A model generated the notes under the pieces. The model saw only the letters and a program-made list of their open reading frames with translations, had not been told where the DNA came from and searched no databases. A DNA stretch of 64,000 nt from Macrostomum lignano (Eukaryota): assembly GCA_002269645.1 (NCBI GenBank), contig NIVC01001223.1, forward strand, positions 97,186 through 161,185. The letters run 5' to 3'. Below are positions 5,271 to 56,654 of this stretch, piece after piece (within the stretch, counting starts at the first letter, position 1; every line of letters starts with the position of its first letter). Made by a program: the position numbers and the translations under genes.

Positions 5271-5355
5271 TGAAATAAGCATGTTTGAGAATAAAGTTCA
5301 TTAATTTCTTATCCATTCTTAAATCGATTCAGACCCTGCGCCATTCGCACACCAC

Positions 5356-5999
5356 TTCCCACACGGTCATCCAGTTCCCACACGGTCATCCAGTTCCCAC
5401 ACGGTCATCCAGTTCCCACACGGTCATCCAGTTCCCACACGGTCATCCAGTTCCCACACGGTCATCCAGTTCCCACACGGTCATCCAGTTCCCACACGGT
5501 CATCCAGTTCCCACACGGTCATCCAGTTCCCACACGGTCATCCAGTTCCCACACGGTCATCCAGTTCCCACACGGTCATCCAGTTCCCACACGGTCATCC
5601 AGTTCCCACACGGTCATCCAGTTCCCACACGGTCATCCAGTTCCCACACGGTCATCCAGTTCCCACACGGTCATCCAGTTCCCACACGGTCATCCAGTTC
5701 CCACACGGTCATCCAGTTCCCACACGGTCATCCAGTTCCCACACGGTCATCCAGTTCCCACACGGTCATCCAGTTCCCACACGGTCATCCAGTTCCCACA
5801 CGGTCATCCAGTTCCCACACGGTCATCCAGTTCCCACACGGTCATCCAGTTCCCACACGGTCATCCAGTTCCCACACGGTCATCCAGTTCCCACACGGTC
5901 ATCCAGTTCCCACACGGTCATCCAGTTCCCACACGGTCATCCAGTTCCCACACGGTCATCCAGTTCCCACACGGTCATCCAGTTCCCACACGGTCATCC
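5356..5999. repeat. 19-bp minisatellite TTCCCACACGGTCATCCAG, ~34 perfect copies
   Basis: Perfect tandem array; source of ORF 5285..6025. Confidence 0.97.
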
Positions 6000-6842: not shown

Positions 6843-9800
6843 AGATCTGGGATCTGGGATCTGGATCTGGGATCTGGATCTGGGATCTGGATCTGGGATC
6901 TGGATCTGGGATCTGGATCTGGGATCTGGATCTGGGATCTGGATCTGGGATCTGGATCTGGGATCTGGATCTGGGATCTGGATCTGGGATCTGGATCTGG
7001 GATCTGGATCTGGGATCTGGATCTGGGATCTGGATCTGGGATCTGGATCTGGGATCTGGATCTGGGATCTGGATCTGGGATCTGGATCTGGGATCTGGAT
7101 CTGGGATCTGGATCTGGGATCTGGATCTGGGATCTGGATCTGGGATCTGGATCTGGGATCTGGATCTGGGATCTGGATCTGGGATCTGGATCTGGGATCT
7201 GGATCTGGGATCTGGATCTGGGATCTGGATCTGGGATCTGGATCTGGGATCTGGATCTGGGATCTGGATCTGGGATCTGGATCTGGGATCTGGATCTGGG
7301 ATCTGGATCTGGGATCTGGATCTGGGATCTGGATCTGGGATCTGGATCTGGGATCTGGATCTGGGATCTGGATCTGGGATCTGGATCTGGGATCTGGATC
7401 TGGGATCTGGATCTGGGATCTGGATCTGGGATCTGGATCTGGGATCTGGATCTGGGATCTGGATCTGGGATCTGGATCTGGGATCTGGATCTGGGATCTG
7501 GATCTGGGATCTGGATCTGGGATCTGGATCTGGGATCTGGATCTGGGATCTGGATCTGGGATCTGGATCTGGGATCTGGATCTGGGATCTGGATCTGGGA
7601 TCTGGATCTGGGATCTGGATCTGGGATCTGGATCTGGGATCTGGATCTGGGATCTGGATCTGGGATCTGGATCTGGGATCTGGATCTGGGATCTGGATCT
7701 GGGATCTGGATCTGGGATCTGGATCTGGGATCTGGATCTGGGATCTGGATCTGGGATCTGGATCTGGGATCTGGATCTGGGATCTGGATCTGGGATCTGG
7801 ATCTGGGATCTGGATCTGGGATCTGGATCTGGGATCTGGATCTGGGATCTGGATCTGGGATCTGGATCTGGGATCTGGATCTGGGATCTGGATCTGGGAT
7901 CTGGATCTGGGATCTGGATCTGGGATCTGGATCTGGGATCTGGATCTGGGATCTGGATCTGGGATCTGGATCTGGGATCTGGATCTGGGATCTGGATCTG
8001 GGATCTGGATCTGGGATCTGGATCTGGGATCTGGATCTGGGATCTGGATCTGGGATCTGGATCTGGGATCTGGATCTGGGATCTGGATCTGGGATCTGGA
8101 TCTGGGATCTGGATCTGGGATCTGGATCTGGGATCTGGATCTGGGATCTGGATCTGGGATCTGGATCTGGGATCTGGATCTGGGATCTGGATCTGGGATC
8201 TGGATCTGGGATCTGGATCTGGGATCTGGATCTGGGATCTGGATCTGGGATCTGGATCTGGGATCTGGATCTGGGATCTGGATCTGGGATCTGGATCTGG
8301 GATCTGGATCTGGGATCTGGATCTGGGATCTGGATCTGGGATCTGGATCTGGGATCTGGATCTGGGATCTGGATCTGGGATCTGGATCTGGGATCTGGAT
8401 CTGGGATCTGGATCTGGGATCTGGATCTGGGATCTGGATCTGGGATCTGGATCTGGGATCTGGATCTGGGATCTGGATCTGGGATCTGGATCTGGGATCT
8501 GGATCTGGGATCTGGATCTGGGATCTGGATCTGGGATCTGGATCTGGGATCTGGATCTGGGATCTGGATCTGGGATCTGGATCTGGGATCTGGATCTGGG
8601 ATCTGGATCTGGGATCTGGATCTGGGATCTGGATCTGGGATCTGGATCTGGGATCTGGATCTGGGATCTGGATCTGGGATCTGGATCTGGGATCTGGATC
8701 TGGGATCTGGATCTGGGATCTGGATCTGGGATCTGGATCTGGGATCTGGATCTGGGATCTGGATCTGGGATCTGGATCTGGGATCTGGATCTGGGATCTG
8801 GATCTGGGATCTGGATCTGGGATCTGGATCTGGGATCTGGATCTGGGATCTGGATCTGGGATCTGGATCTGGGATCTGGATCTGGGATCTGGATCTGGGA
8901 TCTGGATCTGGGATCTGGATCTGGGATCTGGATCTGGGATCTGGATCTGGGATCTGGATCTGGGATCTGGATCTGGGATCTGGATCTGGGATCTGGATCT
9001 GGGATCTGGATCTGGGATCTGGATCTGGGATCTGGATCTGGGATCTGGATCTGGGATCTGGATCTGGGATCTGGATCTGGGATCTGGATCTGGGATCTGG
9101 ATCTGGGATCTGGATCTGGGATCTGGATCTGGGATCTGGATCTGGGATCTGGATCTGGGATCTGGATCTGGGATCTGGATCTGGGATCTGGATCTGGGAT
9201 CTGGATCTGGGATCTGGATCTGGGATCTGGATCTGGGATCTGGATCTGGGATCTGGATCTGGGATCTGGATCTGGGATCTGGATCTGGGATCTGGATCTG
9301 GGATCTGGATCTGGGATCTGGATCTGGGATCTGGATCTGGGATCTGGATCTGGGATCTGGATCTGGGATCTGGATCTGGGATCTGGATCTGGGATCTGGA
9401 TCTGGGATCTGGATCTGGGATCTGGATCTGGGATCTGGATCTGGGATCTGGATCTGGGATCTGGATCTGGGATCTGGATCTGGGATCTGGATCTGGGATC
9501 TGGATCTGGGATCTGGATCTGGGATCTGGATCTGGGATCTGGATCTGGGATCTGGATCTGGGATCTGGATCTGGGATCTGGATCTGGGATCTGGATCTGG
9601 GATCTGGATCTGGGATCTGGATCTGGGATCTGGATCTGGGATCTGGATCTGGGATCTGGATCTGGGATCTGGATCTGGGATCTGGATCTGGGATCTGGAT
9701 CTGGGATCTGGATCTGGGATCTGGATCTGGGATCTGGATCTGGGATCTGGATCTGGGATCTGGATCTGGGATCTGGATCTGGGATCTGGATCTGGGATCT

Positions 9801-9944
9801 GGATCTGGGATCTGGATCTGGGATCTGGATCTGGGATCTGGATCTGGGATCTGGATCTGGGATCTGGATCTGGGATCTGGATCTGGGATCTGGATCTGGG
9901 ATCTGGATCTGGGATCTGGATCTGGGATCTGGATCTGGGATCTG
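6843..9944. repeat. 13-bp satellite GATCTGGGATCTG, ~238 perfect copies (~3.1 kb)
   Basis: Homogeneous array; source of the 1095-aa and 1067-aa artefact ORFs. Confidence 0.98.
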
Positions 9945-13325: not shown

Positions 13326-13428
13326 ATTTGGTTCTTTTAAAAATAATTTCTCGATCTAGCCGTAAAAACGGTTATAAGATTGTTTTAAAATTTATTGAAA
13401 TTTGCTCGTCAGCGAAGTAATGGTAGTG

Positions 13429-14037
13429 GGCTGGTCAGAAGGGAGTGTACACTGTGGGACTGCTAATTAGGGGCTGGTCAGAAGGGAGTGTACACTGTGG
13501 GACTGCTAATTAGGGGCTGGTCAGAATGGAGTGTACACTGTGGGACTGCTAATTAGGGCTGGTCAGAAGGGAGTGTACACTGTGGGACTGCTAATTAGGG
13601 GCTGGTCAGAAGGGAGTGTACACTGTGGGACTGCTAATTAGGGGCTGGTCAGAAGGGAGTGTACACTGTGGGACTGCTAATTAGGGGCTGGTCAGAAGGG
13701 AGTGTACACTGTGGGACTGCTAATTAGGGCTGGTCAGAAGGGAGTGTACACTGTGGGACTTCTAATTAGGGGCTGGTCAGAAGGGAGTGTACACTGTGGG
13801 ACTTCTAATTAGGGCTGGTCAGAAGGGAGTGTTCACTGTGGGACTTCTAATTAGGGGCTGGTCAGAAGGGAGTGTACACTGTGGGACTGCTAATTAGGGG
13901 CTGGTCAGAAGGGAGTGTACACTGTGGGACTTCTAATTAGGGGCTGGTCAGAAGGGAGTGTACACTGTGGGACTTCTAATTAGGGCTGGTCAGAAGGGAG
14001 TGTACACTGTGGGACTTCTAATTAGGGCTGGTCAAGT
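13429..14037. repeat. 42-43-bp minisatellite (GGGCTGGTCAGAAGGGAGTGTACACTGTGGGACTGCTAATTAG), ~14 copies
   Basis: Near-perfect tandem array. Confidence 0.95.
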
Positions 14038-14512
14038 GGGGAGTGTAAAATTGGGTCTCGGACTATTTGGTTTGAAAAAATTAAATATTGTGAACATTCA
14101 TAAAAATCATAGTGTTTTTTGTTATTAAAAAAATTGCACAGAGCTCTCTGTGCAGATTAAAAGTTGATTTAAAAACAAAAAGAATCAAGAATGTCGTAAG
14201 TACAGCTGCATTAGTTAGTTGGTTTAAAAGAGAATGTACTCGTCTACGCATAGAATAAGATTTTATATTTGCACGCAAATATCACAATTATTTAAGATTA
14301 AATTTCATCAAGTGTCTAGAACAGCGACCGTGGACTCAGCAAAGCACTTCTGTAGGATCTGAGACTGCGAGGGGCAGACATTAGCAGTGCTGCTAGACGA
14401 TGTAGCTCGCTGATGTAGTTGGACTTGTGACTGAGCCTGCAATTGCACAGATTATGCAGTATTGTATCCCCAGATCTGCAGTGCATGTCTAACCATCTGT
14501 CTAGACAAGCAA

Positions 14513-17500
14513 CTAGGCCCGTGTTTTCCCTTCCATGTCTGAAGAAAATTGAATAGCAAGGTCAAAATTCCTGATCCCAATCTGAGATCCCAGATTCCCG
14601 ATCCCAATCTGAGATCCCACATTCCTGATCCCAATCTGGAATCCCACATTCCTGATCCCAATCTGAAATCCCACATTCCTGATCCCAATCTGAAATCCCA
14701 CATTCCTGATCCCAATCTGAAATCCCACATACCTGATCCCAATTTTAAATCCCACATACCTGATCCCAATTTTAAATCCCATATTCCTGATCCTAATCTG
14801 AAATCCCACATTGATCCCAATCTGAGATCCCAGATTCCCGATCCCAATCTGGAATCCCGGATTCCTGATCCCAATCTGCAATCCCAGATTCCTGATTCCA
14901 ATCTGAGATTCCAGATTCCTGATCCCAATTTTAAATCCCAGATTCCTGATCCAAATATGAAATCCCACATTCCTGATCCCAATCTGAAATCCCACATTCC
15001 TGATCCCAATCTGAAATCCCACATTCCTGATCCCAATTTTAAATCCCAGATTCCTGATCCTCATCTGCAATCCCACATTCCTGATCCCAATCTGAGATCC
15101 CACATTCCTGATCCCAATCTGAAATCCCACATACCTGATCCCAATTTTAAATCCCATATTCCTGATCCTAATCTGAAATCCCACATTGATCCCAATCTGA
15201 GATCCCAGATTCCCGATTCCAATCTGGAATCCCGGATTCCTGATCCCAATCTGCAATCCCAGATTCCTGATTCCAATCTGAGATCCCAGATTCCTGATCC
15301 CAATTTTAAATCCCAGATTCCTGATCCCAATCTGAAATCCCATATTCCTGATCCAAATATGAAATCCCAGATTCCTGATCCCAATCTGAAAACCCAGATT
15401 CCTGATCCTTATCTGCAATCCCAAATTCCTGATCCCAATTTGAAATCTCACATTTCTGATCCCAATCTGAGATCCCAGATTCCTGATCCTAATCTGAGAT
15501 CCCGGATTCCTAATCCCAATCTGAGATCCCAGATTCCTGATCCCAATTTGAAATCCCACATTTCTGATCCCAATCTGAAATCCCAGATTTCTGATCTTAA
15601 TCTGAGATCCCGGATTCCTGATCCTAATCTGAGATCCCAGATTCCTGATCCCAATTTGAAATCCCACATTCCCGATCCCAATCTGAGATCCCGGATTCCT
15701 GATCCCAATCTGAAATCCAGGATTCCTGATCCTAATCTGTAATCCCAGATTCCTAATCCCAATCTGAAATCCCAGATTCCCGATCCCAATTTTAAATTTC
15801 ATATTTCTGATCCCAATCTGAGATCCCAGTTTCCTGATCCTCATCTGCAATCCCACATTCCTGATCCCAATCTGAGATCCCACATACCTGATCCCAATTT
15901 GAAATCCCACATTTCTGATCCCAATCTGAGATCCCAGATTTCTGATCCCAATCCATAATCCAGGATTCCTGATCCTCATCTGCAATCCCAGATTCCTGAT
16001 CCCAATCTGAAGTCCCACAGTCCTGATCCCAATCTGAGATCCCACGTTCGTGATCCCAATCTGAGATCCCAGATTCCTGATCCCAATTTGTGTGCTCACT
16101 CCTGCCGCCATAGCCCGAAGGCTTCCGATTCCTGTTGGCCGACAGCGAAGAAGCCGAAGAAGAGACCGTCGCCATTGCCAAGTCGTCGTTTCCGCCGCCG
16201 CGACCGACGCCGCCGATGCCGTTAACTCTGCCGCCGTCGCTGCCCGAGACGAACTGCACCGGCGGCAGTCCGACTGGCGACGGATAACGCGTCTGCTGGT
16301 TGTGAAGGCTGCTGGGCTGTTGCTGCTGCTGCTGTTGTTGCTGGGAGACGGGCCGCTGCGGCTGCGACTGCCGCCGGGGATTCTCCGTCCGAAGCGGCGG
16401 CGGCGGTGGGCGCCATTCGGGATCGAGCTCTGAGTCGAATTTTGCTAAGGACGGGGCCGTCGGTCCGAATAAAATGTAGCAGAAATTTGCGCAGCCGCCG
16501 CCGTGGTCGAACGGGTTGATCAGATCCGGGTTGCGCTTTGTGTTGTACAGGTCCTTGATCTGGTGGTTAGGGAGAGGGTTGATGAGAAGTAGCACTAGTG
16601 TTGGCCAGGGCCTTCCCGAGGGTCTGAGAGCCGTGCTACATTTCCCTGGGTGTCTAGAACCTGGCCCAGATCTCTGTAGATTGGGCTAGATCTCCCTGAG
16701 CATCTAGAGACTGTGCTACGAGTAATCACCCGTAGTATCTTCGCTCGTATGGACTGCGCACGCTAGAACACCCTGAATATCTAGAGGCTGTGCTGGATCT
16801 CTGAGGATCTGTAGACTGTGCTAGACTACTCCTGGGTATCTAGAGAATGTGCTAGATCTCTGAGTATCTGGAGGCTGTGCTAGAGATTCTCCACAATCCA
16901 CAGCAGCGCTCACATCCTCATTCGTGGAGGTCTCGCGGCAGATCAGCAGGGTGTGGAAGCCGCCAAGTCCAACCACAGAGAACAAGGAGAAAAATGCCAC
17001 CAAGATGACTACCAGAGTGCAGACGGGAAGATTGAGTTGAGTTAAGGAAAACAAACACTTTAATTGCTGCTTAAAAATATCAAATATGGTAAAACTAGGT
17101 TTAAAAGTATTTTTTGACAAAGGATATCTGGTAGGCGACTCTCTCAGCACCTGGATAAAGTCTCCATTTTTTTGCCTGCTCACTGAAATGATAGAATTGA
17201 AATGCAATAGACATGGTTAGGTAGCAGCGGTTTCATTTAGTATGGCGATAATGATCACTAGTTCAGAAAAAATATAAAATTAAGAAATGGCATCTCGTAA
17301 AAAAACTAATACTCAAACAAAACAAAACTCGAGGAAGAAAATTCAAGTAGAAATTCCATTTTTTCTAAGATCGTTGATTTCCGTGACACCCCAACTCCCA
17401 AAGATCCCAATCTCCATCACACCCCAGCACACCAAAGATCCCAATCCCCGTGACAACCCATGACACAGACCCCAATTCAATTGGGAGACTTCTCAAGAGA

Positions 17501-20500
17501 TCTCATTCTAGTAAATATCAAATTTTCAAAGAAATCACCCATTCTCCAGAGATCTGGATCCAAATCAGTATTGGTGTCTTTTCAAAAGCAAAAATTCCAA
17601 AGTCCAGCTTCCAAATAAGGATCCTTTAATCTGGAAAGTATCCCACTCTGACAAAGAAAATCCGTCCCAACTCAAAGCACTCACGAATAACCAAATTGAT
17701 GCAGCCGAACACCATAATGTAGACACAATAGACGGTCACGCTGGCCAAGAACAAATAAAAATATCGATAATTCCGCCTGCCAACGCAGTTGCCAACCCAC
17801 GGGCAGTGGTGATCGAATCTGTCAACGCAATTGTCGCATGTAGAACAGTGGCTGGCCCTTGGCGGCCGCCACAGCTTGCAGGTCTGGCAGAATTTCAGCT
17901 TGAATAATCGGCCATTGATTCGAATGTCGCGCAATGTCTCGTATTGCGGAACCGTGCTGTGCGAGGCTTGACGTGGGTTTTATTATCGATTTATAGATTT
18001 TGTCAGATTGTGGCTGATTTTGAGCCCGATTAGCCAACCAATATTGACAGTTTTTGAGCCCGATTAGCTAACCAATATTGACAGTTTTTGAGCATAATTA
18101 GCCAACCAATATTGACAGTTTTTGAGCCTAATTAGCCAACCAATATTGGCAGTTTTTGAGCCCGATTAGCCAACCAATATTGACAGTTTTTGAGCCCGAT
18201 TAGCTAACCAATATTGACAGTTTTTGAGCCTAATTAGCTAACCAATATTGACAGTTTTTGAGCCCGATTAGCCAACCAATATTGACAGTTTTTGAGCCTA
18301 ATTAGCCAACCAATATTGACAGTTTTTGAGCCTAATTAGCTAACCAATATTGGCAGTTTTTGAGCCCGATTAGCCAACCAATATTGACAGTTTTTGAGCC
18401 TAATTAGCCAACCAATATTGACAGTTTTTGAGCCCGATTAGCCAACCAATATTGGCAGTTTTTGAGCCTAATTAGCCAACCAATATTGGCAGTTTTTGAG
18501 CCCGATTAGCCAACCAATATTGACAGTTTTTGAGCCCGATTAGCCAACCAATATTGACAGTTTTTGAGCCTAATTAGCCAACCAATATTGGCAGTTTTTG
18601 AGCCCGATTAGCCAACCAATATTGACAGTTTTTGAGCCCGATTAGCCAACCAATATTGGCAGTTTTTGAGCCCGATTAGCCAACCAATATTGACAGTTTT
18701 TGAGCCCGATTAGCCAACCAATATTGGCAGTTTTTGAGCCTAATTAGCTAACCAATATTGACAGTTTTTGAGCCCGATTAGCCAACCAATATTGACAGTT
18801 TTTGAGCCTAATTAGCCAACCAATATTGGCAGTTTTTGAGCCCGATTAGCCAACCAATATTGGCAGTTTTTGAGCCCGATTAGCCAACCAATATTGGCAG
18901 TTTTTGAGCCCGATTAGCCAACCAATATTGACAGTTTTTGAGCCCGATTAGCCAACCAATATTGGCAGTTTTTGAGCCTAATTAGCTAACCAATATTGAC
19001 AGTTTTTGAGCCTAATTAGCTAACCAATATTGACAGTTTTTGAGCCTAATTAGCTAACCAATATTGACAGTTTTTGAGCCCGATTAGCCAACCAATATTG
19101 ACAGTTTTTGAGCCTAATTAGCCAACCAATATTGGCAGTTTTTGAGCCCGATTAGCCAACCAATATTGACAGTTTTTGAGCCCGATTAGCCAACCAATAT
19201 TGACAGTTTTTGAGCCCGATTAGCCAACCAATATTGGCAGTTTTTGAGCCTAATTAGCTAACCAATATTGACAGTTTTTGAGCCTAATTAGCTAACCAAT
19301 ATTGACAGTTTTTGAGCCTAATTAGCTAACCAATATTGACAGTTTTTGAGCCTAATTAGCCAACCAATATTGACAGTTTTTGAGCCTAATTAGCCAACCA
19401 ATATTGACAGTTTTTGAGCCTAATTAGCCAACCAATATTGGCAGTTTTTGAGCCCGATTAGCCAACCAATATTGACAGTTTTTGAGCCCGATTAGCCAAC
19501 CAATATTGACAGTTTTTGAGCCCGATTAGCCAACCAATATTGGCAGTTTTTGAGCCTAATTAGCTAACCAATATTGACAGTTTTTGAGCCTAATTAGCTA
19601 ACCAATATTGACAGTTTTTGAGCCTAATTAGCTAACCAATATTGACAGTTTTTGAGCCCGATTAGCCAACCAATATTGACAGTTTTTGAGCCTAATTAGC
19701 CAACCAATATTGGCAGTTTTTGAGCCCGATTAGCCAACCAATATTGACAGTTTTTGAGCCCGATTAGCCAACCAATATTGACAGTTTTTGAGCCCGATTA
19801 GCCAACCAATATTGACAGTTTTTGAGCCTAATTAGCTAACCAATATTGGCAGTTTTTGAGCCCGATTAGCCAACCAATATTGGCAGTTTTTGAGCCTAAT
19901 TAGCTAACCAATATTGACAGTTTTTGAGCCTAATTAGCTAACCAATATTGACAGTTTTTGAGCCTAATTAGCTAACCAATATTGACAGTTTTTGAGCCTA
20001 ATTAGCCAACCAATATTGACAGTTTTTGAGCCTAATTAGCCAACCAATATTGGCAGTTTTTGAGCCCGATTAGCCAACCAATATTGACAGTTTTTGAGCC
20101 CGATTAGCCAACCAATATTGACAGTTTTTGAGCCCGATTAGCCAACCAATATTGGCAGTTTTTGAGCCTAATTAGCTAACCAATATTGACAGTTTTTGAG
20201 CCTAATTAGCTAACCAATATTGACAGTTTTTGAGCCTAATTAGCTAACCAATATTGACAGTTTTTGAGCCTAATTAGCTAACCAATATTGACAGTTTTTG
20301 AGCCTAATTAGCTAACCAATATTGACAGTTTTTGAGCCTAATTAGCTAACCAATATTGACAGTTTTTGAGCCTAATTAGCTAACCAATATTGACAGTTTT
20401 TGAGCCTAATTAGCTAACCAATATTGACAGTTTTTGAGCCCGATTAGCTAACCAATATTGACAGTTTTTGAGCCTAATTAGCTAACCAATATTGACAGTT

Positions 20501-21659
20501 TTTGAGCCTAATTAGCTAACCAATATTGACAGTTTTTGAGCCTAATTAGCTAACCAATATTGACAGTTTTTGAGCCTAATTAGCTAACCAATATTGACAG
20601 TTTTTGAGCCTAATTAGCTAACCAATATTGACAGTTTTTGAGCCCGATTAGCTAACCAATATTGACAGTTTTTGAGCCTAATTAGCTAACCAATATTGAC
20701 AGTTTTTGAGCCTAATTAGCTAACCAATATTGACAGTTTTTGAGCCCGATTAGCCAACCAATATTGACAGTTTTTGAGCCTAATTAGCTAACCAATATTG
20801 ACAGTTTTTGAGCCTAATTAGCTAACCAATATTGACAGTTTTTGAGCCTAATTAGCTAACCAATATTGACAGTTTTTGAGCCTAATTAGCTAACCAATAT
20901 TGACAGTTTTTGAGCCTAATTAGCTAACCAATATTGACAGTTTTTGAGCCTAATTAGCTAACCAATATTGACAGTTTTTGAGCCCGATTAGCTAACCAAT
21001 ATTGACAGTTTTTGAGCCTAATTAGCTAACCAATATTGACAGTTTTTGAGCCCGATTAGCTAACCAATATTGACAGTTTTTGAGCCTAATTAGCTAACCA
21101 ATATTGACAGTTTTTGAGCCCGATTAGCCAACCAATATTGGCAGTTTTTGAGCCCGATTAGCTAACCAATTTTTGGCGAATTTCAAAACCTCGACGACCA
21201 CCTGAAGTCCCTACAAGTCTATTACATTAGTTGGGTTCTGAGACAGATTAAATGTATTTTACAGTGTAGCTCGTACTTTTCCATGGAAATCAATAAAGTG
21301 CACCCGAATCCAGATTCTCCCTATCTAAAAAATCAAGCTCTAAAAGATGCAAACTCACCCATCTCAGCCTCCATCCAGGCAGCCTCGTCGGGCCCAGCCC
21401 TGGGAATGATGCCCGGATCGCTCAGGGTGGTGCGCAGCAGGCAGGCCAGCACAAAGCCACACTGCAGCACGGCGAAAACTGGCACAGCTGGCGACAGATT
21501 CACTGCCAAAAAACGACAATCGAACGCGAAGAATAGTCCCGAAAACACCACCACCAGAAGCAGGGTTAGGTAGAACACTGACAGGTTCCTAGCGCACACG
21601 CAGCGACCATTGCAGGTGATCCAGCTCTTACCCTTGTACTGCTCCCAGCGCTTTGGCAT
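14513..21659 (-). CDS. ZDHHC9/14/18: DHHC palmitoyl acyltransferase, ZDHHC9/14/18 (Erf2/app) subfamily
   Basis: Exons: 21659-21360; ~17965-17685 (DHHC-CRD: [44 protein letters not shown]); 17182-17128; 17016-16914 ([14 protein letters not shown]); 16559-16100 (NPF motif, low-complexity tail); 14538-14513 (NMEGKTRA*). Phases agree at all junctions except exon1/exon2, where only a weak AAG acceptor fits. Confidence 0.93.
14567..16089. repeat. 27-bp minisatellite (GATCCCAGATTCCTGATCCCAATCTGA) in the last ZDHHC intron
   Basis: About 55 variant units with a ~374-bp internal higher-order duplication (CACATTGATCCC landmark at ~14807 and ~15182). Confidence 0.95.
17017..17127 (-). other. U12-type AT-AC intron (111 nt) in ZDHHC
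   Basis: 5' splice site ATATCCTTTG (17127-17118), branch site TTTCCTTAAC (17050-17041), terminal AC (17018-17017). Removal gives [14 protein letters not shown], colinear without gaps with ZDHHC9-type ETPGTVLEVLICFF (recalled). Confidence 0.9.
18015..21172. repeat. 34-bp minisatellite (ATTGACAGTTTTTGAGCCCGATTAGCCAACCAAT), ~93 copies, ZDHHC intron
   Basis: Tandem array with three variable sites; the right end is dominated by the CCTAATTAGCTAACC variant. Confidence 0.97.
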
Positions 21660-26189: not shown

Positions 26190-29100
26190 TTAACCTTTCG
26201 GCTGACGTTTGTATATAACTAGTCGAGCATCTGACGAAATATTTTTCAGCAAAGACGTAGAAGTGCTTAGCTCTGTGGTCATTAGATCGTCCAGCAAGTA
26301 GCATATGTCACCTTTTGATGGAAATACATAAGCGACGTAATGACCTTCGTCGACTCGTTCTCCCAGGTGCACAATCACACTTTAGAGGCAATAGCGCTGA
26401 TTGTTATAGTCAATTTCTGGCGTTAAATCGAAGCCCACTCGGTTCTTGACAATAGTTGCCTGGCTTCTCAAGAGCCTGTTCACGACGAAGCACAGGAGAG
26501 GTGGCGCATTTTGAGGAGTTCTGCTATGAACGCAGCTACTTGTCTGACAGGCTGTGCATGTGATGTCATCAGACTCGTCCGGTCGTAGTGCCGCATTCAC
26601 AAGCTGAATCAGCTGCTGTCCTTCAACTGGTTGAACCACCACGAATGTTTCATGCAAACTTTCAGTAGTCGCGGCATTATTGCACCGGAGACATAGGGTG
26701 GACCCGCCGAGCTAAAATAATAAAGCCAAACAGCTGAGACGGAATTGAAAACATCGATTTAAAGTGCCTGTACTCTCTTACTGCCATCTATGCTGTACGT
26801 GTCCGATCCTGGATTCATATTTGTTTACATGTATTTGCCTCTTTTTACTACATTAGTTCCCTATGATATTGTCGTTTCAAATGGTTTCCGTTCAAAAAGT
26901 AAAGCAAGTTTCTGTACTCGTAAGTGCTTTTTGAAATTTAGAAACGAGAAGTATTACCTGAATTCTAAACTGGCGACGAATAGTCTGCAGCTTTTGAGAA
27001 ATGAGCACGAAAAATTCAAAGCAGTCGTTATATTCGTTGGTATTTATTTGACCAGCCGTACAGCATTCTTCCAATGCAGTGTTGTACAAATATTCGCTGA
27101 ATCCAGATCTGCTCGAAATGTTGGCCAAGAGTCGTATAAGAAAGGACGAATTCACGGCTGTTTCAGAAAAATTTCTCCCTGACAATGCCGCACCAACTGC
27201 GTGAAGACTGGCGTTGAACCAACAGAGTTTTCCATTACGATTGGGTAGGCCGAATGGACGATAGCCTGATGTCGATAGCGCCGAAGCTTCGACAGTAACA
27301 AAACTGGCGACATGATCAGAACAATCAACAAAAGCATGAGCGGCTGGCTCGTTTATCACTGTTGGCAGTGGCGGATCTAGGATTTTATTTAAGGTGGGCG
27401 GTCCAAGTTTGTGGCGCAACATGAGTATGAGGGGCGCCAATTTTTAAGCTAGGGGCGCAAAAAATGCGTGTAGGGGGCGAAAAATCAAGTTTAAAGGGCA
27501 CAAACTTAGGTTTTTTGGGGGGGGGGCAATATGTTTCATCCAGCTGTTTCGGGGGGGGGGGGGGCGCTCCCCCCCCCCCCCCCCCCCTAAATCCGCCCCT
27601 GACTGTTGGTATTCGTGGAAACTCACCATTGCTACGGTTAGCAGACTCACAAGTTATAGATTCATGTGCACGTTCATGACGCCAAAGCTTATTTTGTTCG
27701 ATGCGTTCCTCTCGAGAAAATCCTTTGCGTCGACGTCCCTTATTCGATCGAGAAGCTTTTAAGATTTTGCCGATTCCTACAGGCTTCTCGGCAACTCGGG
27801 GCAATCCAATTTTTCGTCTAACCGCTGCGATATGCGAACACGATTGAGCAGAGACACAAGAACACGAAGCAACGCCGTTGCTAAATGTCACAACATTATT
27901 TCGTCCGGCAACGTTAGTCACTATGAAGTTACCAAGAGTAGGGTTGAATGAAACTTTATGTTGCTCACTAAGCAAGCTGATCCGTGTCGACTGTTCGTTG
28001 TCGTCTAGATCGACATTAACTCGCACAGATTTGTGGCTAGATTCTCCAACGGGCTGGTGAACAGGAGTACCAGTAGCATCATTGGACAATGAAGGCCCCG
28101 TGCCACCTGACTCATTGCTGTTGCTATCATAGAAACTCATGTTGGGACGTATGACAGTCACTTTAATCGCACCAATTTCTCGAATTTCTCGAGTCGCTGA
28201 AGTCTGAGAGTGCCGGCGTTGAATGTTCGCAGCTATTTGTTCTAACGACAACGATGGAGAGAGTGTTACAGTTTCGGGCGACTGTTGTAGATGTTGGAAC
28301 TCCGGCTTTAGTGTAGTTTCCTTGGCCACACAAACCACGAAGAATTTCGTTCCTGTAGTATCGAGAAGTTTGGTAAAGTCCGACAATGCAGTCATCGATC
28401 GTTGCATCCTTGAAGTTAAGCACACGCTTGAGCATTGCGTTTATTGATTCTGATTGGTTCTGAGTTACACCGGTAACTGGGCAGTAGTGCGATTGTAGAA
28501 TCCACTTTGCAAAAAATTTAGGGATTAATGGGTGAATTTGATTGTCAAAATAAGCGGCAAAACTTGGATTCCAGTTTTTTTTGCAGCTTGCATACTGGGC
28601 ATTGTACTGCTCGATGCTGTCTGTTTCTAGCAGGGAGAGTAGATCTGCTGAAATCATGTCTTCATCAGCCGATGTTCCACCGTTCTTGCGAATCCAGAAC
28701 CGGACGTCCCGCTTCAGATGGTTCCAGCATCCCAAAAATCGGATATTGGGGAAGACAGAAGCCATCGAATTTCTCAGCCCAATTTCTCCATCCATAACGC
28801 ATGCCACATTAGTAGTTGCCAATGCAGGAAGCGAGGATTTCACTTCTTGCCACAAAAGTTTGTGGCGAGCCTCGAGCTTTCGATGGTGAATGAGAAAAAA
28901 GGCTGGGCAAACCGGATTGTTAATGAAAATTGGTAATCGAATTACAAGAGGTGAGACTAGTGCTCTTGTCATCTCAAATCCAGTATCATACGACAATAGC
29001 TGATTCCTATCGTCCAACAATAAAATGCGATTTAGCAAGTCCAGAAGCTCAGGACAGCCAGCTGGAATAGCTAAGTCAGGAAACGTCTGGATTGTACGAA

Positions 29101-31119
29101 TGAATCCTGGTAGTTCATTGGCAAGAATGTGAATGTTCATAATTTCGTCTTTTGAAAGCATATTTGGCATAGAGCTCTTAAGGTTCTCGACTTGCTTTAG
29201 ATTCCGAGGATTACGCACTGGGTTGCTGCTCTGACCTAGATAAAGTCGATATGCTTGCGAAGGAGCAAGGGTCGAAAGTTCGGCTCGAAGATTGCCGAGC
29301 ACCGATGGGCTAGTCCGCATAAAAGTTCCACAGTGCTTGCGGTTTCCGTGATACACCATGTTAGCAGGTGGTTGCACTGATGGATTTCCGATATAGTGGA
29401 TCAGTGTCTTGCTGAAATAAGAACATTAGAAGCAGTTAGTATATTAAACTGTCAAAAACAGGATGCTACACCCGATTTTATTCAACATTTTATAATTTAT
29501 ATTTACCTTGAATCTTTAGAGCCATTAGAATTGATTAATTGATACGCTTGTCTGATGAACAAGCGGGACATTTGTCCAGAGGTGTCTCTGGACAAATAGC
29601 GGTACTTATATAGAGTTGGACGTATTCTAAAAAGTTATTATTAATTTTGTCAAAAATTATAATTTGCTAGATTAAATTCGAAAGCGCAAGGTTTTATATT
29701 GTATATATGTAGCTGTAGCATTTTATAAAAAAAACATAATATTGTTCTTAAAGAACATACCAGAAACAACTTGTTTGGTGTTATAAGCATATCTTATGGC
29801 TATGTCAATGTGTTAATGGATTTATGCATATTTCAATAAGTTGATTCTAAAAATAATTTTTATATATTATTTTTGGAGACAAAATGCCAATTATTTTAAC
29901 AAAACTTTTATACTTTTGGATGGAAAAAACGTTTTGTATGAATTTATATGAGGAATTTGTTTATAAATTATATTCTTATTTTATTTAAATTAGTTCATGT
30001 ACTACACTAAAGCCTATAACCTATATTATCTAAAATAATTTTGACTTTGCTAATAATCTAGCCCCACTCTAATACAAGCTTATTTGCATAAAAACATTCA
30101 GAACAGTCAAAATCAATAGCTTTAATTGTGGCAGCAAGAATGTACACAACTGGCAACACCAATGCAGCCACACTGGAAACCACCCAACCTTATCTAGCTG
30201 GGGTGGGGTGGTGCATACCAAGCTAGTCGGCTTGCTAAGTCGGGGCAGGAGGGGGTTGGCAAAGCCTATCATGCCACACCACCTTTTTGTACCTCCCTAG
30301 GCCCCTCAATCTTGTGCTTTTAGTAATTTTACAAATATACATACAGAGAAGCACAAACTCTTCACTGCCATTTTATCTATTGAAATAAAAAGACCTTTTG
30401 TCTCCAGCTATTGTATACCAACATCATGCACAGGCCTTAACAATTAATCTTATTATCATTTACAAGAGACTATTTTGTAGGAGCTAAAATTAGTTTTATA
30501 ACTTATCAAAGCCTATATTAACACAATCAATTTTAAGACTTTTAATGAAGTATTTATGGGTTAACCAATATTAATATTAAAAAGAAAGATTGTGTCAATA
30601 TTTAAAATATTTATTCAAAAAAGAAAATATAATGCAATGCTAGTAATAAGACATTTACTAATAAAAAATCTGAAAATATCCAGTTTTATTGACATTAAGC
30701 AGCAAGAAATAATGTTTCTATGATCTATCTAGATCATTGGAAGCAGAACCTTGTCACAGGTATACAGAATTTACCTATTTACTAAAATTCTACATTTAAT
30801 TTTACATTACATTTTATATTTAATATATAAGATACAGCAAACAAATGCTGTATAACCTAATAGAAACTGTTTCAGTACCATTTGAAATAGTGCTTTTAGA
30901 CCTATTGTGTCTGGATGATCAGAATTTTTACCTCGGCAGTCGGTCTCGTCCTCCGTCTTTCCATAAATAGCCATCCGCCTTCCAGTCATCTGACTCGGAC
31001 GTCGATTTAGGTTTATACAGATAAAGGGACTCTGTGGGTCTATATACAGGTGAGTCGATAACACAGGCTTGGGAGGAGTGCTCTTTTAATAGCTTTAAAG
31101 CAATAGCTGTCGATAGCAT
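26190..31119 (-). pseudogene. Disrupted MULE transposase-SWIM-USP (peptidase C19) fusion gene, ~1,013 aa when repaired
   Basis: Exons 31119-30932, 29626-29507, 29411-26958, 26711-26190, all GT-AG with matching phases. DDE motifs SYDTGF, CVMDGE, CWNH, NQSESIN; SWIM CSC..SCSH; USP Cys box GLPNRNGKLCWFNASL, NDCFEFF, CLRC/CTAC pairs, His box VIVHLGERVDEGHYVAYV, YLLDD, LVIYKR. Lesions: frameshift ~28311, MITE at 27366-27601, TAA at 26382-26384. Confidence 0.9.
27366..27601. mobile_element. hAT-type MITE (236 bp) nested in the MULE coding sequence
   Basis: TIRs CAGTGGCGGATCTAG / CTAAATCCGCCCCTG; perfect 8-bp TSD ACTGTTGG at 27358-27365 and 27602-27609. Excision restores the frame (RIPTVINEPAAH). 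Confidence 0.93.
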
Positions 31120-31628: not shown

Positions 31629-40888
<9,260 letters not shown>

Positions 40889-41042
40889 ATTATTTTTTTG
40901 TTGCTAGCTGGCAACTGTGTTCCAGTTAATGACGGTTGGCTTGAAAATAGATTAATTTGTTTATTATATTAAATTTTGTATTAGCTAATTCTCTTTTGTT
41001 TATGGTTGTTAGCTAGCATCTCTGCCATTGCGTGGGTAGATT

Positions 41043-41400
41043 GTTTGATAGATACAAATATAGATGGTTGATAGATACAAATATAGATGGTTGATAGATA
41101 CAAATATAGATGGTTGATAGATACAAATATAGATGGTTGATTGATAGATACAAATATAGATGGTTGATAGATACAAATATAGATGGTTGATAGATACAAA
41201 TATAGATGGTTGATAGATACAAATATAGATGGTTGATAGATACAAATATAGATGGTTGATAGATACAAATATAGATGGTTGATAGATACAAATATAGATG
41301 GTTGATAGATACAAATATAGATGGTTGATAGATACAAATTTAGATGGTTGATAGATACAAATATAGATGGTTGATTGATTGATCGATAAAAATATGGATG
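41043..41400. repeat. 23-bp minisatellite (GATAGATACAAATATAGATGGTT)
   Basis: About 15 copies. Confidence 0.95.
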
Positions 41401-41834
41401 GGTTGATACATGGATGATTATGCAAACAGACCGCAATTACAAGCTAAGAAAATATTACTATTGATGTATTTCACACAACCTGTCAATGTGTGTCTGTGTT
41501 TAAGTAATTTTCTTCTCTACAAAGCCTCAGTGATATTTTTTCTGCTTTTTTATTCCTACATATTTCAATAGAATCACCTATCGCTTGCTGTCAATATAGA
41601 ACAGGCCCACCATATATAGACCACTATTGTCCATGAAGCATTGAAATAAATTATCTATATAGTCAGGAAATCGTTTGTTCTTTGATCATTACTTAACTGT
41701 TCGTATTACCATTTTTTCTTTAAATTTTTACTTCTGTTAGACTTCTCTGTAAACTAAGGGTTACAGTGGAGATGTTACCTATCCCATGTAGACAATCCGG
41801 TCCCTCATTCTATGGTAGTCCTCATCCTATGGCT

Positions 41835-42620
41835 ATGATGGTCCTTCTCATCCTATGATGGTCCTTCTCATCCTATGATGGTCCTTCTCATCCTATGGTG
41901 GTCCTTCTCATCCTATGGTGGTCCTTCCATCCTATGATGGTCCTTCCATCCTATGGTGGTCCTTCCATCCTATGATGGTCCTTCTCATCCTATGGTGTTT
42001 CTTCTCATCCTATGGTGTTTCTTCTCATCCTATGGTGGTCCTTCTCATCCTATGGTGGTCCTTCTCATCCTATGGTGGTCCTTCTCATCCTATGATGGTC
42101 CTTCTGATTCTATGGTGGTCCTTCTCATCCTATGGTGGTCCTTCCATCCTATGATGGTCCTTCTCATCCTATGGTGTTTCTTCTCATCCTATGGTGGTCC
42201 TTCTCATCCTATGGTGTTTCTTCTCATCCTATGGTGGTCCTTCCATCCTATGATGGTCCTTCCATCCTATGATGGTCCTTCTCGTCCTATGGTGGTCCTT
42301 CTCATCCTATGGTGTTTCTTCTCATCCTATGATGGTCCTTCTCATCCTATGGTGTTTCTTCTCATCCTATGGTGGTCCTTCCATCCTATGATGGTCCTTC
42401 TCATCCTATGATGGTCCTTCTCATCCTATGGTGTTTCTTCTCATCCTATGGTGGTCCTTCCATCCTATGATGGTCCTTCCATCCTATGGTGTTTCTTCTC
42501 ATCCTATGGTGGTCCTTCTCATCCTATGGTGGTCCTTCCATCCTATGGTGGTCCTCATCTTATGGCGGTCCTTCTTATCCTATTGTGGTCCTTCTCATTC
42601 TATGGTGGTCCATCTCATCT
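41835..42620. repeat. 19-20-bp minisatellite (TTCTCATCCTATGGTGGTCC)
   Basis: About 40 variant copies. Confidence 0.95.
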
Positions 42621-42753
42621 AATCTTGGTCTCTCATCTTGTGATGGTCTTTACTATTTTGTGATGGTAGTTCTCATCGTCCAGTTAGAGTCCTCATCCTG
42701 ATGTACAGGCTGCTCTTAGCCCTTCGCACCACCTGTTAATAATTCTAGCAGCC

Positions 42754-45143
42754 ATGGACAGCAGCGGATCGGCCATGGAAGCCAGCTTCATCAAATCCCA
42801 GGTGTGCGGCTGGCCCGAGCCGCGCCAGCTCGAACTGATCGTGGGCGAGCTGACCGGCACAGACCAGCCGGGCGAGCTCTGCCTGGCCCGGCTGTCCGGC
42901 CTGGCCGGTCCAGTCGGCGGCCTGCTGCGGATTCAATTGGACAGCGGCGAATGCGATGAAATCGGCGATGATGTTGGCGAGGCCGACTTGGCCGATCGGT
43001 TGCGCCGGTTCTGCCGATCCCGACGCGACCTTCGCCTGCTGCCGATCCTGTGCTGGCGGGACCGGCTGCCGGCTTTGGAGAGGGCGCTGGCCCGCCTGCT
43101 GGGCGGCCGGTCCGGCCCGTGGACTCCGGCTGAGGTGAGCAAGCGGCATCAGCTCCGGCGCATCCTGCCGATTGAACCGGTGGCCACTGAGCTGTGCATC
43201 CGGTTCTGCAAGCAGCCGAAGCAGTCGGCCGCCTCAGTGGCTATGACCAACCGCCTGCTAGCTGATTTAAAGCACTGCATTGGCCAGGATCCGAATTTCT
43301 CTCATTTGGCTCTGACTGGCCGGCTGAAGAACTGTAAATTGCATCAAGGCGACTGCGCCTATTATAGATGTCAGGTGAGATAAATACCTGTCACTGCACT
43401 CTACAAATGCTGAGTTGCCCTCCCATGGTTACTGAGAATAACTTCTGATAGTACCCTAATCCCTACTGATAGTCGCCCCCTAATTCCTGACAATTTGAGA
43501 ATCTTCCCCTAAAGTCTACTGAGAATCGCCCCCCTAATCCCTACTGAGATCCTACTGAGAATCGCCCCCTAATCCCTACTGAGATCCTACTGAGAATCGC
43601 CCCCTAATCCCTACTGAGATCCTACTGAGAATCGCCCCCTAATCCCTACTGAGAATCGCCCCCTAATCTCTACTGAGAATCGTCCCCTAATCCCTACTGA
43701 GAATCGCCCCTAATCCCTACTGAGAATCGTCCCCTAATCCCTACTGAGAATCGTCCCCTAATCCCTACTGAGAATCGCCCCTAATCCCTACTGAGAATCG
43801 CCCCTAATCCCTACTGAGAATCGTCCCCTAATCCCTACTGAGAATCGTCCCCTAATCCCTACTGAGAATCGTCCCCTAATCCCTACTGAGAATCGCCCCT
43901 AATCCCTACTAAGAATCGTCCCCTAATCCCTACTGAGAATCGCCCCTAATCCCTACTAAGAATCGTCCCCTAATCCCTACTGAGAATCGCCCCTAATCCC
44001 TACTGAGAATCGCCCAATAATACCTACAGAGAATCGCGCCTAATCCCTACTGAGAATCGTCCCCTAATCCCTACTGAGAATCGCCCCTAATCCCTACTGA
44101 GAATCGCCCCTAATCCCTACTGAGAATCGCCCAATAATACCTACAGAGAATCGCGCCTAATCCCTACTGAGAATCGTCCCCTAATCCCTACTGAGAATCG
44201 CCCCTAATCCCTACTGAGAATCGTCCCCTAATCCCTACTGAGAATCGCCCCTAATCCCTACTGAGAATCGTCCCCTAATCCCTACTGAGAATCGCCCCTA
44301 ATCCCTACTGAGAATCGCCCCTAATCCCTACTGAGAATCGCCCCTAATCCCTACTGAGAATCGCCCCTAATCCCTACTGAGAATCGTCCCCTAATCCCTA
44401 CTGAGAATCGCCCCTAATCCCTACTGAGAATCGCCCCTAATCCCTACTGAGAATCGTCCCCTAATCCCTACTGAGAATCGCCCCTAATCCCTACTGAGAA
44501 TCGCCCCTAATCCCTACTGAGAATCGTCCCCTAATCCCTACTGAGAATCGCCCCTAATCCCTACTGAGAATCGCCCCTAATCCCTACTGAGAATCGCCCA
44601 ATAATACCTACAGAGAATCGCGCCTCCTCTCACTGTTATCGTACTGGCCATTCGTGCTACTACCAGTAGTGAATGCATTTATTCCTTTACACAATCCTCT
44701 CGCAGCTGATGGCCAGCGCCATATTTGATGCATTCCGTGATGTCGTCCCGCCGCCGCCGCCGCCCAACTGCGCCACCGCTGCCGCCGTAGCAGCGGACTC
44801 CAACAGTAGAGCGGTCGCGAGTTCGAATCCTGTCGTTTCTAACAGCGAGAACGACAGCTCGGAGACCGAAGCTGAATCAGTTTGCACGCCGTTCCCCCGT
44901 CCGGAGGAGATGCCAGCTCCAGACCTGCTTCTCATGGCCGGTTTCTGTCTCGACGCCGACTCTGACGGCCCGCCGCTGATGCCGCCGCCGGCGCTTCAGC
45001 AGCAGCCAAAGTCTCGCGTTCCGCCAATCGTAGACGTCAGTTCTCTCGGGTCTGCACTCGTCGCCTGTCGGGATATTCGACTGGGCGATCCGAATTTTGT
45101 TAATGACGACACGCCTGACAGGCCCTATGTGCTTAATGACTGA
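42754..45143 (+). CDS. Two-exon protein of unknown function (~352 aa)
   Basis: Exon 42754-43374 (donor CAG|GTGAGA, phase 0) and exon 44706-45143 (acceptor ctcgcAG). GC-rich, open in frame, acceptor-like AG just before the ATG. No family recognised. Confidence 0.7.
43500..44625. repeat. 23-24-bp minisatellite (ATCCCTACTGAGAATCGCCCCTA) in the intron of the unknown gene
   Basis: About 48 copies. Confidence 0.95.
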
Positions 45144-45204
45144 TAGATGTTGGCTCGCGTTCAGTGCCTGACCAGATAGCCCAGTGGATTCGGAGTTTAT
45201 TTAA

Positions 45205-46606
45205 GAATCGCCCCTTCTGCCCCCTCTAGAATTCCCCCTTCTGCTCCCTCTAGAATTCCCCCTTCTGCTCCCTCTAGAATCGCCCCTTCTGCCCCTTGTA
45301 GAACTCCCCCTTCTGCCCCCTCTAGAATTCCCCCTTCTGCCCCCTCTAGAATTCCCCCTTCTGCCCCTTCTAGAATTCCCCCTTCTATCCCCTCTAAAAT
45401 CGCCCCTTCTGCCCCTCTAGAATTCCCCCTTCTGCCCCCTCTAGAATTCCCCCTTCTGCCCCTTCTAGAATTCCCCCTTCTATCCCCTCTAGAATCGCCC
45501 CTTCTGCCCCTCTAGAATTCCCCCTTCTGCCCCCTCTAGAATTCCCCCTTCTGCCCCTTCTAGAATTCCCCCTTCTATCCCCTCTAAAATCGCCCCTTCT
45601 GCCCCTCTAGAATTCCCCCTTCTGCCCCCTCTAGAATTCCCCCTTCTGCCCCTTCTAGAATTCCCCCTTCTATCCCCTCTAAAATCGCCCCTTCTGCCCC
45701 TCTAGAATTCCCCCTTCTGCCCCCTCTAGAATTCCCCCTTCTGCCCCTTCTAGAATTCCCCCTTCTGCCTCCTCTAGAATTCCCCCTTCTGCCCCTTCTA
45801 GAATTCCCCCTTCTATCCCCTCTAGAATCGGCCCTTCTGCCCCTCTAGAATCGCCCCTTCTACCCCCTCTAAAATTCCCCCTTCTATCCCCTCTAGAATT
45901 CCCCCTTCTATCCCCTCTAGAATTCCCCCTTCTATCCCCTCTAGAATCGCCCCTTCTGCCCCTTTAGAATTTTTACCTTCTATCCCCTCTAGAATCGGCC
46001 CTTCTGCTCCCTCTAGAATCGCCCCTTCTGCCCCTTGTAGAACTCCCCCTTCTGCCCCCTCTAGAATTCCCCCTTCTGCCCCCTCTAGAATTCCCCCTTC
46101 TGCCCCTTCTAGAATTCCCCCTTCTATCCCCTCTAGAATCGGCCCTTCTGCCCCTCTAGAATCGCCCCTTCTACCCCCTCTAAAATTCCCCCTTCTATCC
46201 CCTCTAGAATTCCCCCTTCTATCCCCTCTAGAATTCCCCCTTCTATCCCCTCTAGAATCGCCCCTTCTGCCCCTTTAGAATTTTTACCTTCTATCCCCTC
46301 TAGAATCGGCCCTTCTGCTCCCTCTAGAATCGCCCCTTCTGCCCCTTGTAGAACTCCCCCTTCTGCCCCCTCTAGAATTCCCCCTTCTGCCCCCTCTAGA
46401 ATTCCCCCTTCTGCCCCTTCTAGAATTTCCCCTTCTATCCCCTCTAGAATCGGCCCTTCTGCCCCCTCTAGAATTCCCCCTTCTATCCCCTCTAGAATTC
46501 CCCCTTCTATCCCCTCTAGAATCGCCCCTTCTGCCCCTTTAGAATTTTCCCTTCTATCCCCTCTAGAATCGGCCCTTCTGCCCCTCTAGAATCGCCCCTT
46601 CTGCCC
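45205..46606. repeat. 23-24-bp pyrimidine-rich minisatellite (GAATTCCCCCTTCTGCCCCCTCTA)
   Basis: About 58 variant copies with repeated multi-unit blocks. Confidence 0.95.
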
Positions 46607-50689: not shown

Positions 50690-51030
50690 CAGCCAGCCAG
50701 CCAGCCACTCACTCAAGTCAGTCAGTCAGTCAGTCAGTCAGTCAGTCAGTCAGTCAGTCAGTCAGTCAGTCAGTCAGTCAGTCAGTCAGTCAGTCAGTCA
50801 GTCAGTCAGTCAGTCAGTCAGTCAGTCAGTCAGTCAGTCAGTCAGTCAGTCAGTCAGTCAGTCAGTCAGTCAGTCAGTCAGTCAGTCAGTCAGTCAGTCA
50901 GTCAGTCAGTCAGTCAGTCAGTCAGTCAGTCAGTCAGTCAGTCAGTCAGTCAGTCAGTCAGTCAGTCAGTCAGTCAGTCAGTCAGTCAGTCAGTCAGTCA
51001 GTCAGTCAGTCAGTCAGTCAGTCAGTCAGT
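50690..51030. repeat. (CAGT)n microsatellite
   Basis: About 78 perfect units. Confidence 0.98.
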
Positions 51031-56605: not shown

Positions 56606-56654
56606 TGAGGTGTCAAATAAAGATCTCAAAGATCTTATTTGAGGGTCAAAATAA

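Follow-up and report, generated by a model that had tools for sequence, protein, structure and literature searches.

An AT-AC intron with U12-type signals in a ZDHHC9/14/18-family gene of the flatworm Macrostomum lignano

Does the free-living flatworm Macrostomum lignano interrupt a palmitoyltransferase gene with an intron of the minor-spliceosome (U12-type) class, and what would such an intron imply about the machinery that removes it? The question is raised by a 64-kb stretch of contig NIVC01001223.1 (assembly GCA_002269645.1, positions 97,186 to 161,185 of the forward strand), which we analysed as a whole and call the window. Its minus strand carries a six-exon DHHC palmitoyltransferase gene in which intron 3 alone is not of the GT-AG kind, the other four introns being GT-AG. 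We conclude that the segment at 17127-17017 (minus strand) very probably interrupts this ZDHHC9/14/18-family gene as a U12-type AT-AC intron, orthologous in the flatworm to an ancient minor intron of other animals. This M. lignano instance is an expected addition to a well-documented kind of intron.

Signals and splice choice at intron 3

We assembled the gene model from stop-to-stop frames and inspection of their boundaries on the minus strand. Along its whole length, the spliced product of 320 amino acids (aa) shows 100% identity to GenBank PAA70604.1 (BOX15_Mlig012030g1, here P0001), and it contains the DHHC cysteine-rich domain (Pfam PF01529) at residues 123-249 (E=1.4e-41), with the DHHC motif encoded by exon 2. 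Among the best 120 matches listed by a protein database search, those from outside the flatworms share 47-54% identity over 88-99% of the query, and almost all are named ZDHHC9, 14, 18 or app. By sequence similarity, the gene belongs to the ZDHHC9/14/18 subfamily of DHHC palmitoyltransferases and is one of several such genes in M. lignano.

U12-type introns are defined by their 5' splice site and branch point sequence, which are read cooperatively by U11 and U12, and a U4atac/U6atac.U5 tri-snRNP (small nuclear ribonucleoprotein) completes the spliceosome (Turunen et al. 2013, PMC3584512). With a slash marking each splice site, the minus-strand boundaries of intron 3 read GAGTCGCCTACCAG/ATATCCTTTGTC...GTTTTCCTTAACTCAACTCAATCTTCCCGTCTGCAC/TCTGGTAGTC. 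The U12 5' splice site consensus, /ATATCCTT, is matched by ATATCCTTT at 17127-17119. Near the 3' end, the branch consensus TTCCTTAAC is matched by TTTCCTTAAC at 17050-17041, inside which the core 8-mer TCCTTAAC occupies 17048-17041 on the minus strand. The AT 5' end is paired with an AC 3' end, and AC likewise ends the intron in all paralogues and orthologues with a readable 3' end. There is no distinct polypyrimidine tract: pyrimidines make up about 71%, 52% and 40% of the spacers between branch site and 3' splice site in the three M. lignano paralogues, this gene being one of them, and no tract is shared. The intron is 111 nucleotides (nt) long with a GC content of 30%, and the splice from 17128 to 17016 joins AG/T into a serine codon, in phase 2.

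Each motif alone occurs at chance level in the 64 kb (ATATCCTT twice, where 3.5 are expected; TCCTTAAC three times, where 2.1 are expected). For the ordered composite, defined as ATATCCTT followed within 1 kb by TCCTTAAC and then, after 6-33 nt, by AC, the expectation is 0.04 per window, and 16 of 400 first-order Markov simulations contained at least one. The observed composite also coincides with both exon boundaries, a condition absent from the null model.

AT-AC termini alone are insufficient to define U12 dependence (PMC3584512), and a rare class of U2-type AT-AC introns, removed by the major spliceosome (Wu & Krainer 1997, cited in PMC3584512), shares both the AT and the AC end with the window intron. 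The long distance from branch site to 3' end in the present intron is also more U2-like. However, introns of that class lack the ATATCCTT 5' splice site and the TCCTTAAC branch site, both of which are perfect here; the three paralogues share no consistent polypyrimidine tract in the stretch from branch site to 3' end, and the orthologous vertebrate introns are classified as minor. We regard membership of the U2-type class as extremely improbable.

Since the intron is open in frame, 123 stop-free donor/acceptor pairs exist in the span from exon 3 to exon 4. We ranked these pairs by BLOSUM62 alignment of their products to the homologous segment of three orthologues. The AT-AC pair 17127/17017 scored best of all (432), followed by the next best alternative (393); the best GT-AG pair reached 353, full retention of intron 3 reached 313, and skipping of exon 3 with a cryptic GGTAG acceptor scored lowest (290). 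Only the AT-AC pair gave a gap-free alignment to ZDHHC9/14/18 orthologues. A preliminary description of this DNA had read the segment as a U12-type AT-AC intron of a ZDHHC9/14/18-family gene whose removal restores gap-free colinearity. The 5' site, branch site and AC end that it named are all present at the minus-strand positions in Table 1, the colinearity stands at the top of the ranked pairs, and the assignment is supported by the motifs, the exon boundaries and the orthologous position.

The open frame raises the alternative that the 111 nt stay unspliced and add 37 residues to the protein. A stop-to-stop frame from 17216 to 16824 spans the whole intron, and 111 is divisible by 3. Yet no orthologue has a counterpart of these 37 residues, retention falls well behind the AT-AC junction in the ranking, the GC content is low, and the segment is absent from the annotated protein. 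Moreover, the corresponding intron contains an in-frame TAG at one of two older paralogous loci (L001) and is 136 nt long, not a multiple of 3, at the other (L002). We estimate that a 37-codon open frame would be expected about 5% of the time at such composition; the openness is probably a coincidence, and a coding insert is scarcely credible. Retention of intron 3 would add 37 residues without a stop and so escape nonsense-mediated decay; this openness is not conserved.

An AT-AC intron is also what the deposited GenBank models contain: P0001, and P0003 and P0004 for the two older paralogues, all use AT-AC junctions. The Mlig_3_7 annotation was built by mapping transcripts, from a transcriptome assembled de novo and from RNA-seq assemblies (BLAT, StringTie, TACO), with TransDecoder open reading frames (ORFs), and not ab initio (Wudarski et al. 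2017, PMC5730564). A deposited coding sequence with an AT-AC junction from such a transcript-derived annotation is therefore indirect evidence of that junction in RNA. No transcript-derived (Logan) copies of the protein were found, the cluster members being all genome-derived.

A second set of models, the UniProt A0A1I8* entries, mis-splices around the AT-AC intron in six of six cases (P0002, P0125, P0126, P0127, P0131 and P0132), at 17008-17182 of the window, 5438-5542 of L001 and 4666-4801 of L002. These models drop 21, 23 or 31 conserved residues or else read through the region of the branch site as IMIFSLTLAPPTLT, and over the three paralogues the intron is avoided in four ways. The pattern has the look of a systematic artefact of a gene predictor restricted to GT-AG, which accounts for the sole apparent evidence of an alternative structure. 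In that structure the dominant mRNA would skip exon 3 by joining the GT of intron 2 to the cryptic acceptor GGTAG/TCATC (17009/17008), the AT-AC junction being minor or artefactual. It is exactly the structure of UniProt A0A1I8IHP8 (P0002; INLVIL/ILVAFF), and its product is in frame. It would, however, cost the protein 21 residues that all orthologues conserve, and its colinearity score is the lowest; the evasion of the AT-AC intron in four ways is the signature of a GT-AG-only predictor, and the transcript-derived models do not share it. We thus consider dominant skipping of exon 3 very unlikely.

The intron in paralogues and in other animals

The proteins of the two older paralogues are 68% (P0003) and 65% (P0004) identical in amino acid sequence to the window protein, and at both of their genomic loci an AT-AC intron lies in the same serine codon, AG/T. 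The L001 intron reads AAG/ATATCCTTTGTT...TTTTCCTTAAC(+21 nt)...TTAAC/T over 105 nt, and the L002 intron reads AAG/ATATCCTTTTTA...TTTTCCTTAAC(+30 nt)...TGCAC/T. The 9-nt ATATCCTTT, the 11-nt TTTTCCTTAAC and the terminal AC are kept in all three paralogues, amid intron sequence that is otherwise unalignable; purifying selection on the pairing sites for U11/U6atac and U12 would yield such a pattern. Two further loci, L006 and L007, are near-identical homeologous copies of the window gene, and their intron 3 differs from that of the window only by a 1-nt indel in a run of A and a T-to-A change. This sole substitution lies just 5' of the CCTTAAC core, where L006 (2518) and L007 (3163) read TTTACCTTAAC and the window (17048) has TTTTCCTTAAC.

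Outside the flatworms, we compared the orthologous loci of Sinanodonta, Branchiostoma, Channa and Hydractinia, leaving aside the proteins of Saccostrea, Tubulanus, Cephus, Owenia and Mytilus coruscus. An intron at the same codon and in the same phase was found in the bivalve Sinanodonta woodiana (L008; AAG/ATATCCTTT...TTTTCCTTAAC(+9)...TTAC/T), in the amphioxus Branchiostoma lanceolatum (TAG/ATATCCTTT...TTCCTTGAC(+9)...GCAC/T) and in the cnidarian Hydractinia symbiolongicarpus (L003; AAG/ATATCTTTT...TTTTCCTTGAC(+11)...TTAC/T). The Hydractinia 5' splice site, at 6325-6333 of L003, is ATATCTTTT and not ATATCCTTT; its branch site is perfect, with a spacing of 12 nt. In ZDHHC9 of the teleost Channa argus (L004) the same codon carries AAC/ATATCCTTT, the 5' side alone being readable. 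The shared position is phase 2 in the Ser/Thr codon that follows an SP[TAG] motif, in the part of the protein that links the DHHC core to the next transmembrane helix. As codon and phase agree between a cnidarian and bilaterians, the intron is older than the cnidarian-bilaterian split.

Vertebrate introns of this family have been catalogued before. The minor-intron genes listed for human and mouse include ZDHHC9, ZDHHC14, ZDHHC18 and several more members of the ZDHHC family, with the 5' sites AAC/ATATCCTCC for ZDHHC9, AAG/ATATCCTTT for human ZDHHC14 and ZDHHC18, and GAG/ATATCCTTT for mouse Zdhhc14, and with TCCTTAAC or TCCTTGAC as the branch sites of ZDHHC9/14/18 (Olthof et al. 2019, Minor Intron Database, PMC6717393). 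The window intron resembles these in gene family, in AT-AC subtype and in a 5' splice site that is the same or nearly so. The exonic bases that precede the human and mouse 5' sites fit a phase-2 Ser/Thr codon, a position that we infer from the listed 12-mers. The comparison of intron positions with vertebrates, which the preliminary description had proposed, thus gives the same codon for teleost ZDHHC9 on the 5' side of the genomic sequence, and for human and mouse by way of those 12-mers. The M. lignano introns differ in being very short (105-136 nt) and in the distance from branch A to AC, which is 22-31 nt where the non-flatworm orthologues compared here have 9-12 nt.

Two further observations concern these loci. 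In Channa, one gene call ends at the AT-AC 5' site (14228 of L004) and a second call for the same 387-aa product starts at 14181; the gene call may have been truncated or split at the minor intron by the annotation, the predictor or the index. In Sinanodonta, the exon that follows the U12 intron is present in a second, alternative copy at 57470-57680 of L008, which has a separate branch site, TCCTCCTTAAC, and 9 nt beyond it an AC acceptor. This arrangement suggests that the two exon copies are mutually exclusive, with one U12 5' splice site in common.

Branch-to-3' spacing and the minor spliceosome

In the window intron, 24 nt separate the end of the branch motif from the 3' site; counted from the second A of TCCTTAAC, at 17042, to the last intron base, the distance is 25 nt. 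The distance from branch A to 3' site is 25 nt in all three homeologues, 22 nt in L001 and 31 nt in L002; elsewhere it is 12 nt in Hydractinia, 10 nt in amphioxus, and 10 and 9 nt in the bivalve. For U12-type introns an optimum of 11-13 nt has been given and the distance described as a rigid constraint (PMC3584512; PMC6717393; PMC11347168); a short distance is a functional characteristic of these introns and not a defining motif (PMC3584512). The published classifier searches for the branch site up to 40 nt upstream of the 3' splice site (Olthof et al. 2019, PMC6717393), and the gaps of 24, 21 and 30 nt between motif end and 3' site all fall inside this range. The preliminary description had remarked on the long distance, correctly, and this is the sole feature of the intron that is not routine.

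Spacing is part of the evidence that weighs against a U12-type intron removed by a minor spliceosome, since the 25 nt of the window intron amount to two to three times the usual optimum of 11-13 nt, and the 22 and 31 nt of the paralogues are likewise far beyond it. By the rules established in human cells, splicing at the 3' site of the window intron should be inefficient. Beyond about 6 nt from the branch, no AC or AG precedes the AC in use in the window and in L002; the annotated L001 protein bypasses an in-frame AC that comes earlier, 16 nt from its branch A. The transcript support is second-hand, coming through deposited annotation. Finally, Rfam searches at gathering and permissive thresholds found no U11, U12, U4atac or U6atac within the 64-kb window; the permissive scan gave sub-threshold chance matches in repeats only, and is uninformative on the rest of the genome.

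These points bear on a further explanation, in which the U12-like signals are relics: the minor spliceosome of M. lignano would have been lost or degraded, with major or hybrid machinery removing the intron, as has been suggested for the few minor-type introns of Caenorhabditis elegans. Minor-type introns of C. elegans are indeed spliced correctly without detectable minor small nuclear RNAs (snRNAs) (Olthof et al. 2024, PMC11347168). All three paralogues have an atypically long spacing, a possible hint of altered 3'-site recognition, and the lack of a minor snRNA in the window, which is only part of the genome, is compatible with such a loss. Nevertheless, the 9-nt 5' splice site and the 11-nt branch sequence are perfect in three otherwise unalignable introns, implying selection by factors that read the motifs, and Schistosoma and Schmidtea have full sets of minor snRNAs. 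We give the relic explanation very little weight.

A working minor spliceosome in M. lignano is instead strongly implied, because the signals are conserved in three old paralogues and transcript-derived models use the AT-AC junctions; the acting particles are predicted from motifs, conservation and phylogenetic context. On established knowledge of minor splicing, U11 snRNA would pair with ATATCCTTT, and U12 snRNA would pair with the TTCCTTAAC element so that the branch adenosine, at about 17042, is bulged. The U4atac/U6atac.U5 tri-snRNP would then join, with U6atac replacing U11 at the 5' site, and two transesterifications would link 17128 to 17016.

Retention of this machinery is in keeping with what has been published on flatworms. 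A complete minor snRNA set is present in the genomes of Schistosoma mansoni and S. japonicum (Copeland et al. 2009, PMC2770079), U11, U12, U4atac and U6atac have been described in Schmidtea mediterranea (Schmidt et al. 2018, PMC6312358), and Larue & Roy (2023, PMC10639083) name Schistosoma among lineages with minor introns and snRNAs. Given these full sets, retention in Macrostomum is expected; Macrostomum belongs to the same phylum as Schistosoma and Schmidtea, but the Macrostomorpha are an early-branching flatworm lineage. Our literature search found no paper specifically on U12 introns or minor snRNAs in Macrostomum, and the protostome groups named in the ancestral-intron analysis of a 263-species intron taxonomy do not include Platyhelminthes (Olthof et al. 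2024, PMC11347168). The preliminary description had held that a retained minor spliceosome would be informative if the organism were a flatworm. This value was overrated, with the snRNAs of Schistosoma and Schmidtea and the minor introns of human and mouse ZDHHC genes already published.

It is possible, though we hold it rather doubtful, that the minor spliceosome of M. lignano, or of flatworms more widely, follows a relaxed or shifted rule for the distance from branch to 3' splice site. The spacing evidence comes from one gene family, which fits both a genome-wide relaxation and inheritance specific to the family. As a test of the spacing, we sought a further U12-type intron in the window, L001 and L002, and found none. 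Two candidates in the window were rejected: a loose U12-like match at 33103-34141 (plus strand), which has no coding context, and GTATCCTT at 37811, which has no acceptor at proper spacing.

Gene structure, the rest of the window and implications

The coordinates of the gene and of its splicing signals are collected in Table 1.

Table 1. Exons, introns and splicing signals of the M. lignano ZDHHC9/14/18-family gene, in window positions
Feature	Position	Strand	Remarks
Exon 1	21359..21659	-	ATG at 21659; phase 1 end; translation = P0001 residues 1-100
Intron 1, GT-AG (GTGAGT...AAG)	17967..21358	-	3392 nt, mostly 34-nt minisatellite, 93 copies
Exon 2, DHHC catalytic core	17685..17966	-	Pfam DHHC E=1.4e-41
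Intron 2, ordinary U2-type (GTGAGT...TTTCAG)	17183..17684	-	
Exon 3	17128..17182	-	55 nt; last bases AG of split codon
Intron 3, probable U12-type AT-AC, phase 2	17017..17127	-	111 nt
U12-type 5' splice site ATATCCTTT	17119..17127	-	preceded by CAG/; predicted pairing site of U11, then U6atac
U12-type branch point sequence TTTCCTTAAC	17041..17050	-	presumed branch A at 17042
3' terminal AC	17017..17018	-	context GCAC/T at 17020-17016
Exon 4	16914..17016	-	first base T completes split codon
Intron 4, ordinary U2-type (GTGAGC...CACCAG)	16560..16913	-	
Exon 5	16100..16559	-	sole GT-AG pair reproducing P0001 exactly
Intron 5, GT-AG	14437..16099	-	1663 nt, mostly 27-nt minisatellite
Exon 6	14393..14436	-	stop TAG at 14395-14393

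The acceptor of intron 1 implied by P0001 (17967-17975, minus strand) reads CACGTCAAG/CC and lacks a polypyrimidine tract; a CACAG 10 nt downstream is unused, because the frame would break. The array within intron 1 spans 18018-21170 (34-nt unit, 93 copies) and that within intron 5 spans 14567-16087 (27-nt unit, 57 copies). Intron 1 measures 3392 nt in the window but has a length of only 298 nt at L006 and of 942 nt at L007, and minisatellite array length differs greatly between the homeologous copies of the gene. All three frames of the 27-nt array are open, and the array, left unspliced, would extend the ORF to 502 aa.

Minisatellites are extremely dense across the window, with more than 25 arrays of periods from 13 to 43 nt, the largest having a 13-nt unit in 238 copies; their sites include 1755-2997, 5352-5999, 6844-9944, 13428-14047, 36980-47735 and 50689-57791. 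Strong local swings in GC- and AT-skew result from these dense arrays. At 26193-29425 (minus strand) lies an open frame resembling a Mutator-family transposase (PF00872, E=1e-3, below the Pfam cutoff), followed downstream on the same strand by a C-terminal fragment of a ubiquitin C-terminal hydrolase (UCH, PF00443, E=3e-5). The region may be a Mutator-like element (MULE-type) with a protease-like domain, or two adjacent genes. An open frame at 55704-56429 (minus strand) matches Exo_endo_phos (PF03372, E=1.3e-8) and is probably the endonuclease of a remnant retrotransposon of the long interspersed nuclear element (LINE) type. A 587-aa frame resembling Xaa-Pro aminopeptidase (60192-61952, plus strand) contains Creatinase_N_2, Peptidase_M24 and Peptidase_M24_C and is apparently intronless there.

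The significance of the intron itself is low, because the intron, the gene family and flatworm minor splicing have all been documented before. What it adds is that an early-branching, free-living flatworm joins the lineages with clear evidence of minor-type introns. For genome annotation, predictors restricted to GT-AG damage the models of the ZDHHC9/14/18 family, and U12-aware annotation matters for M. lignano. The consistently long spacing offers a lead on how flatworm minor spliceosomes choose their 3' sites. If a relaxed distance rule were true for M. lignano generally, the way in which the minor spliceosome selects its 3' sites would have changed specifically in this lineage, and classifiers that assume a short spacing could under-call flatworm minor introns.

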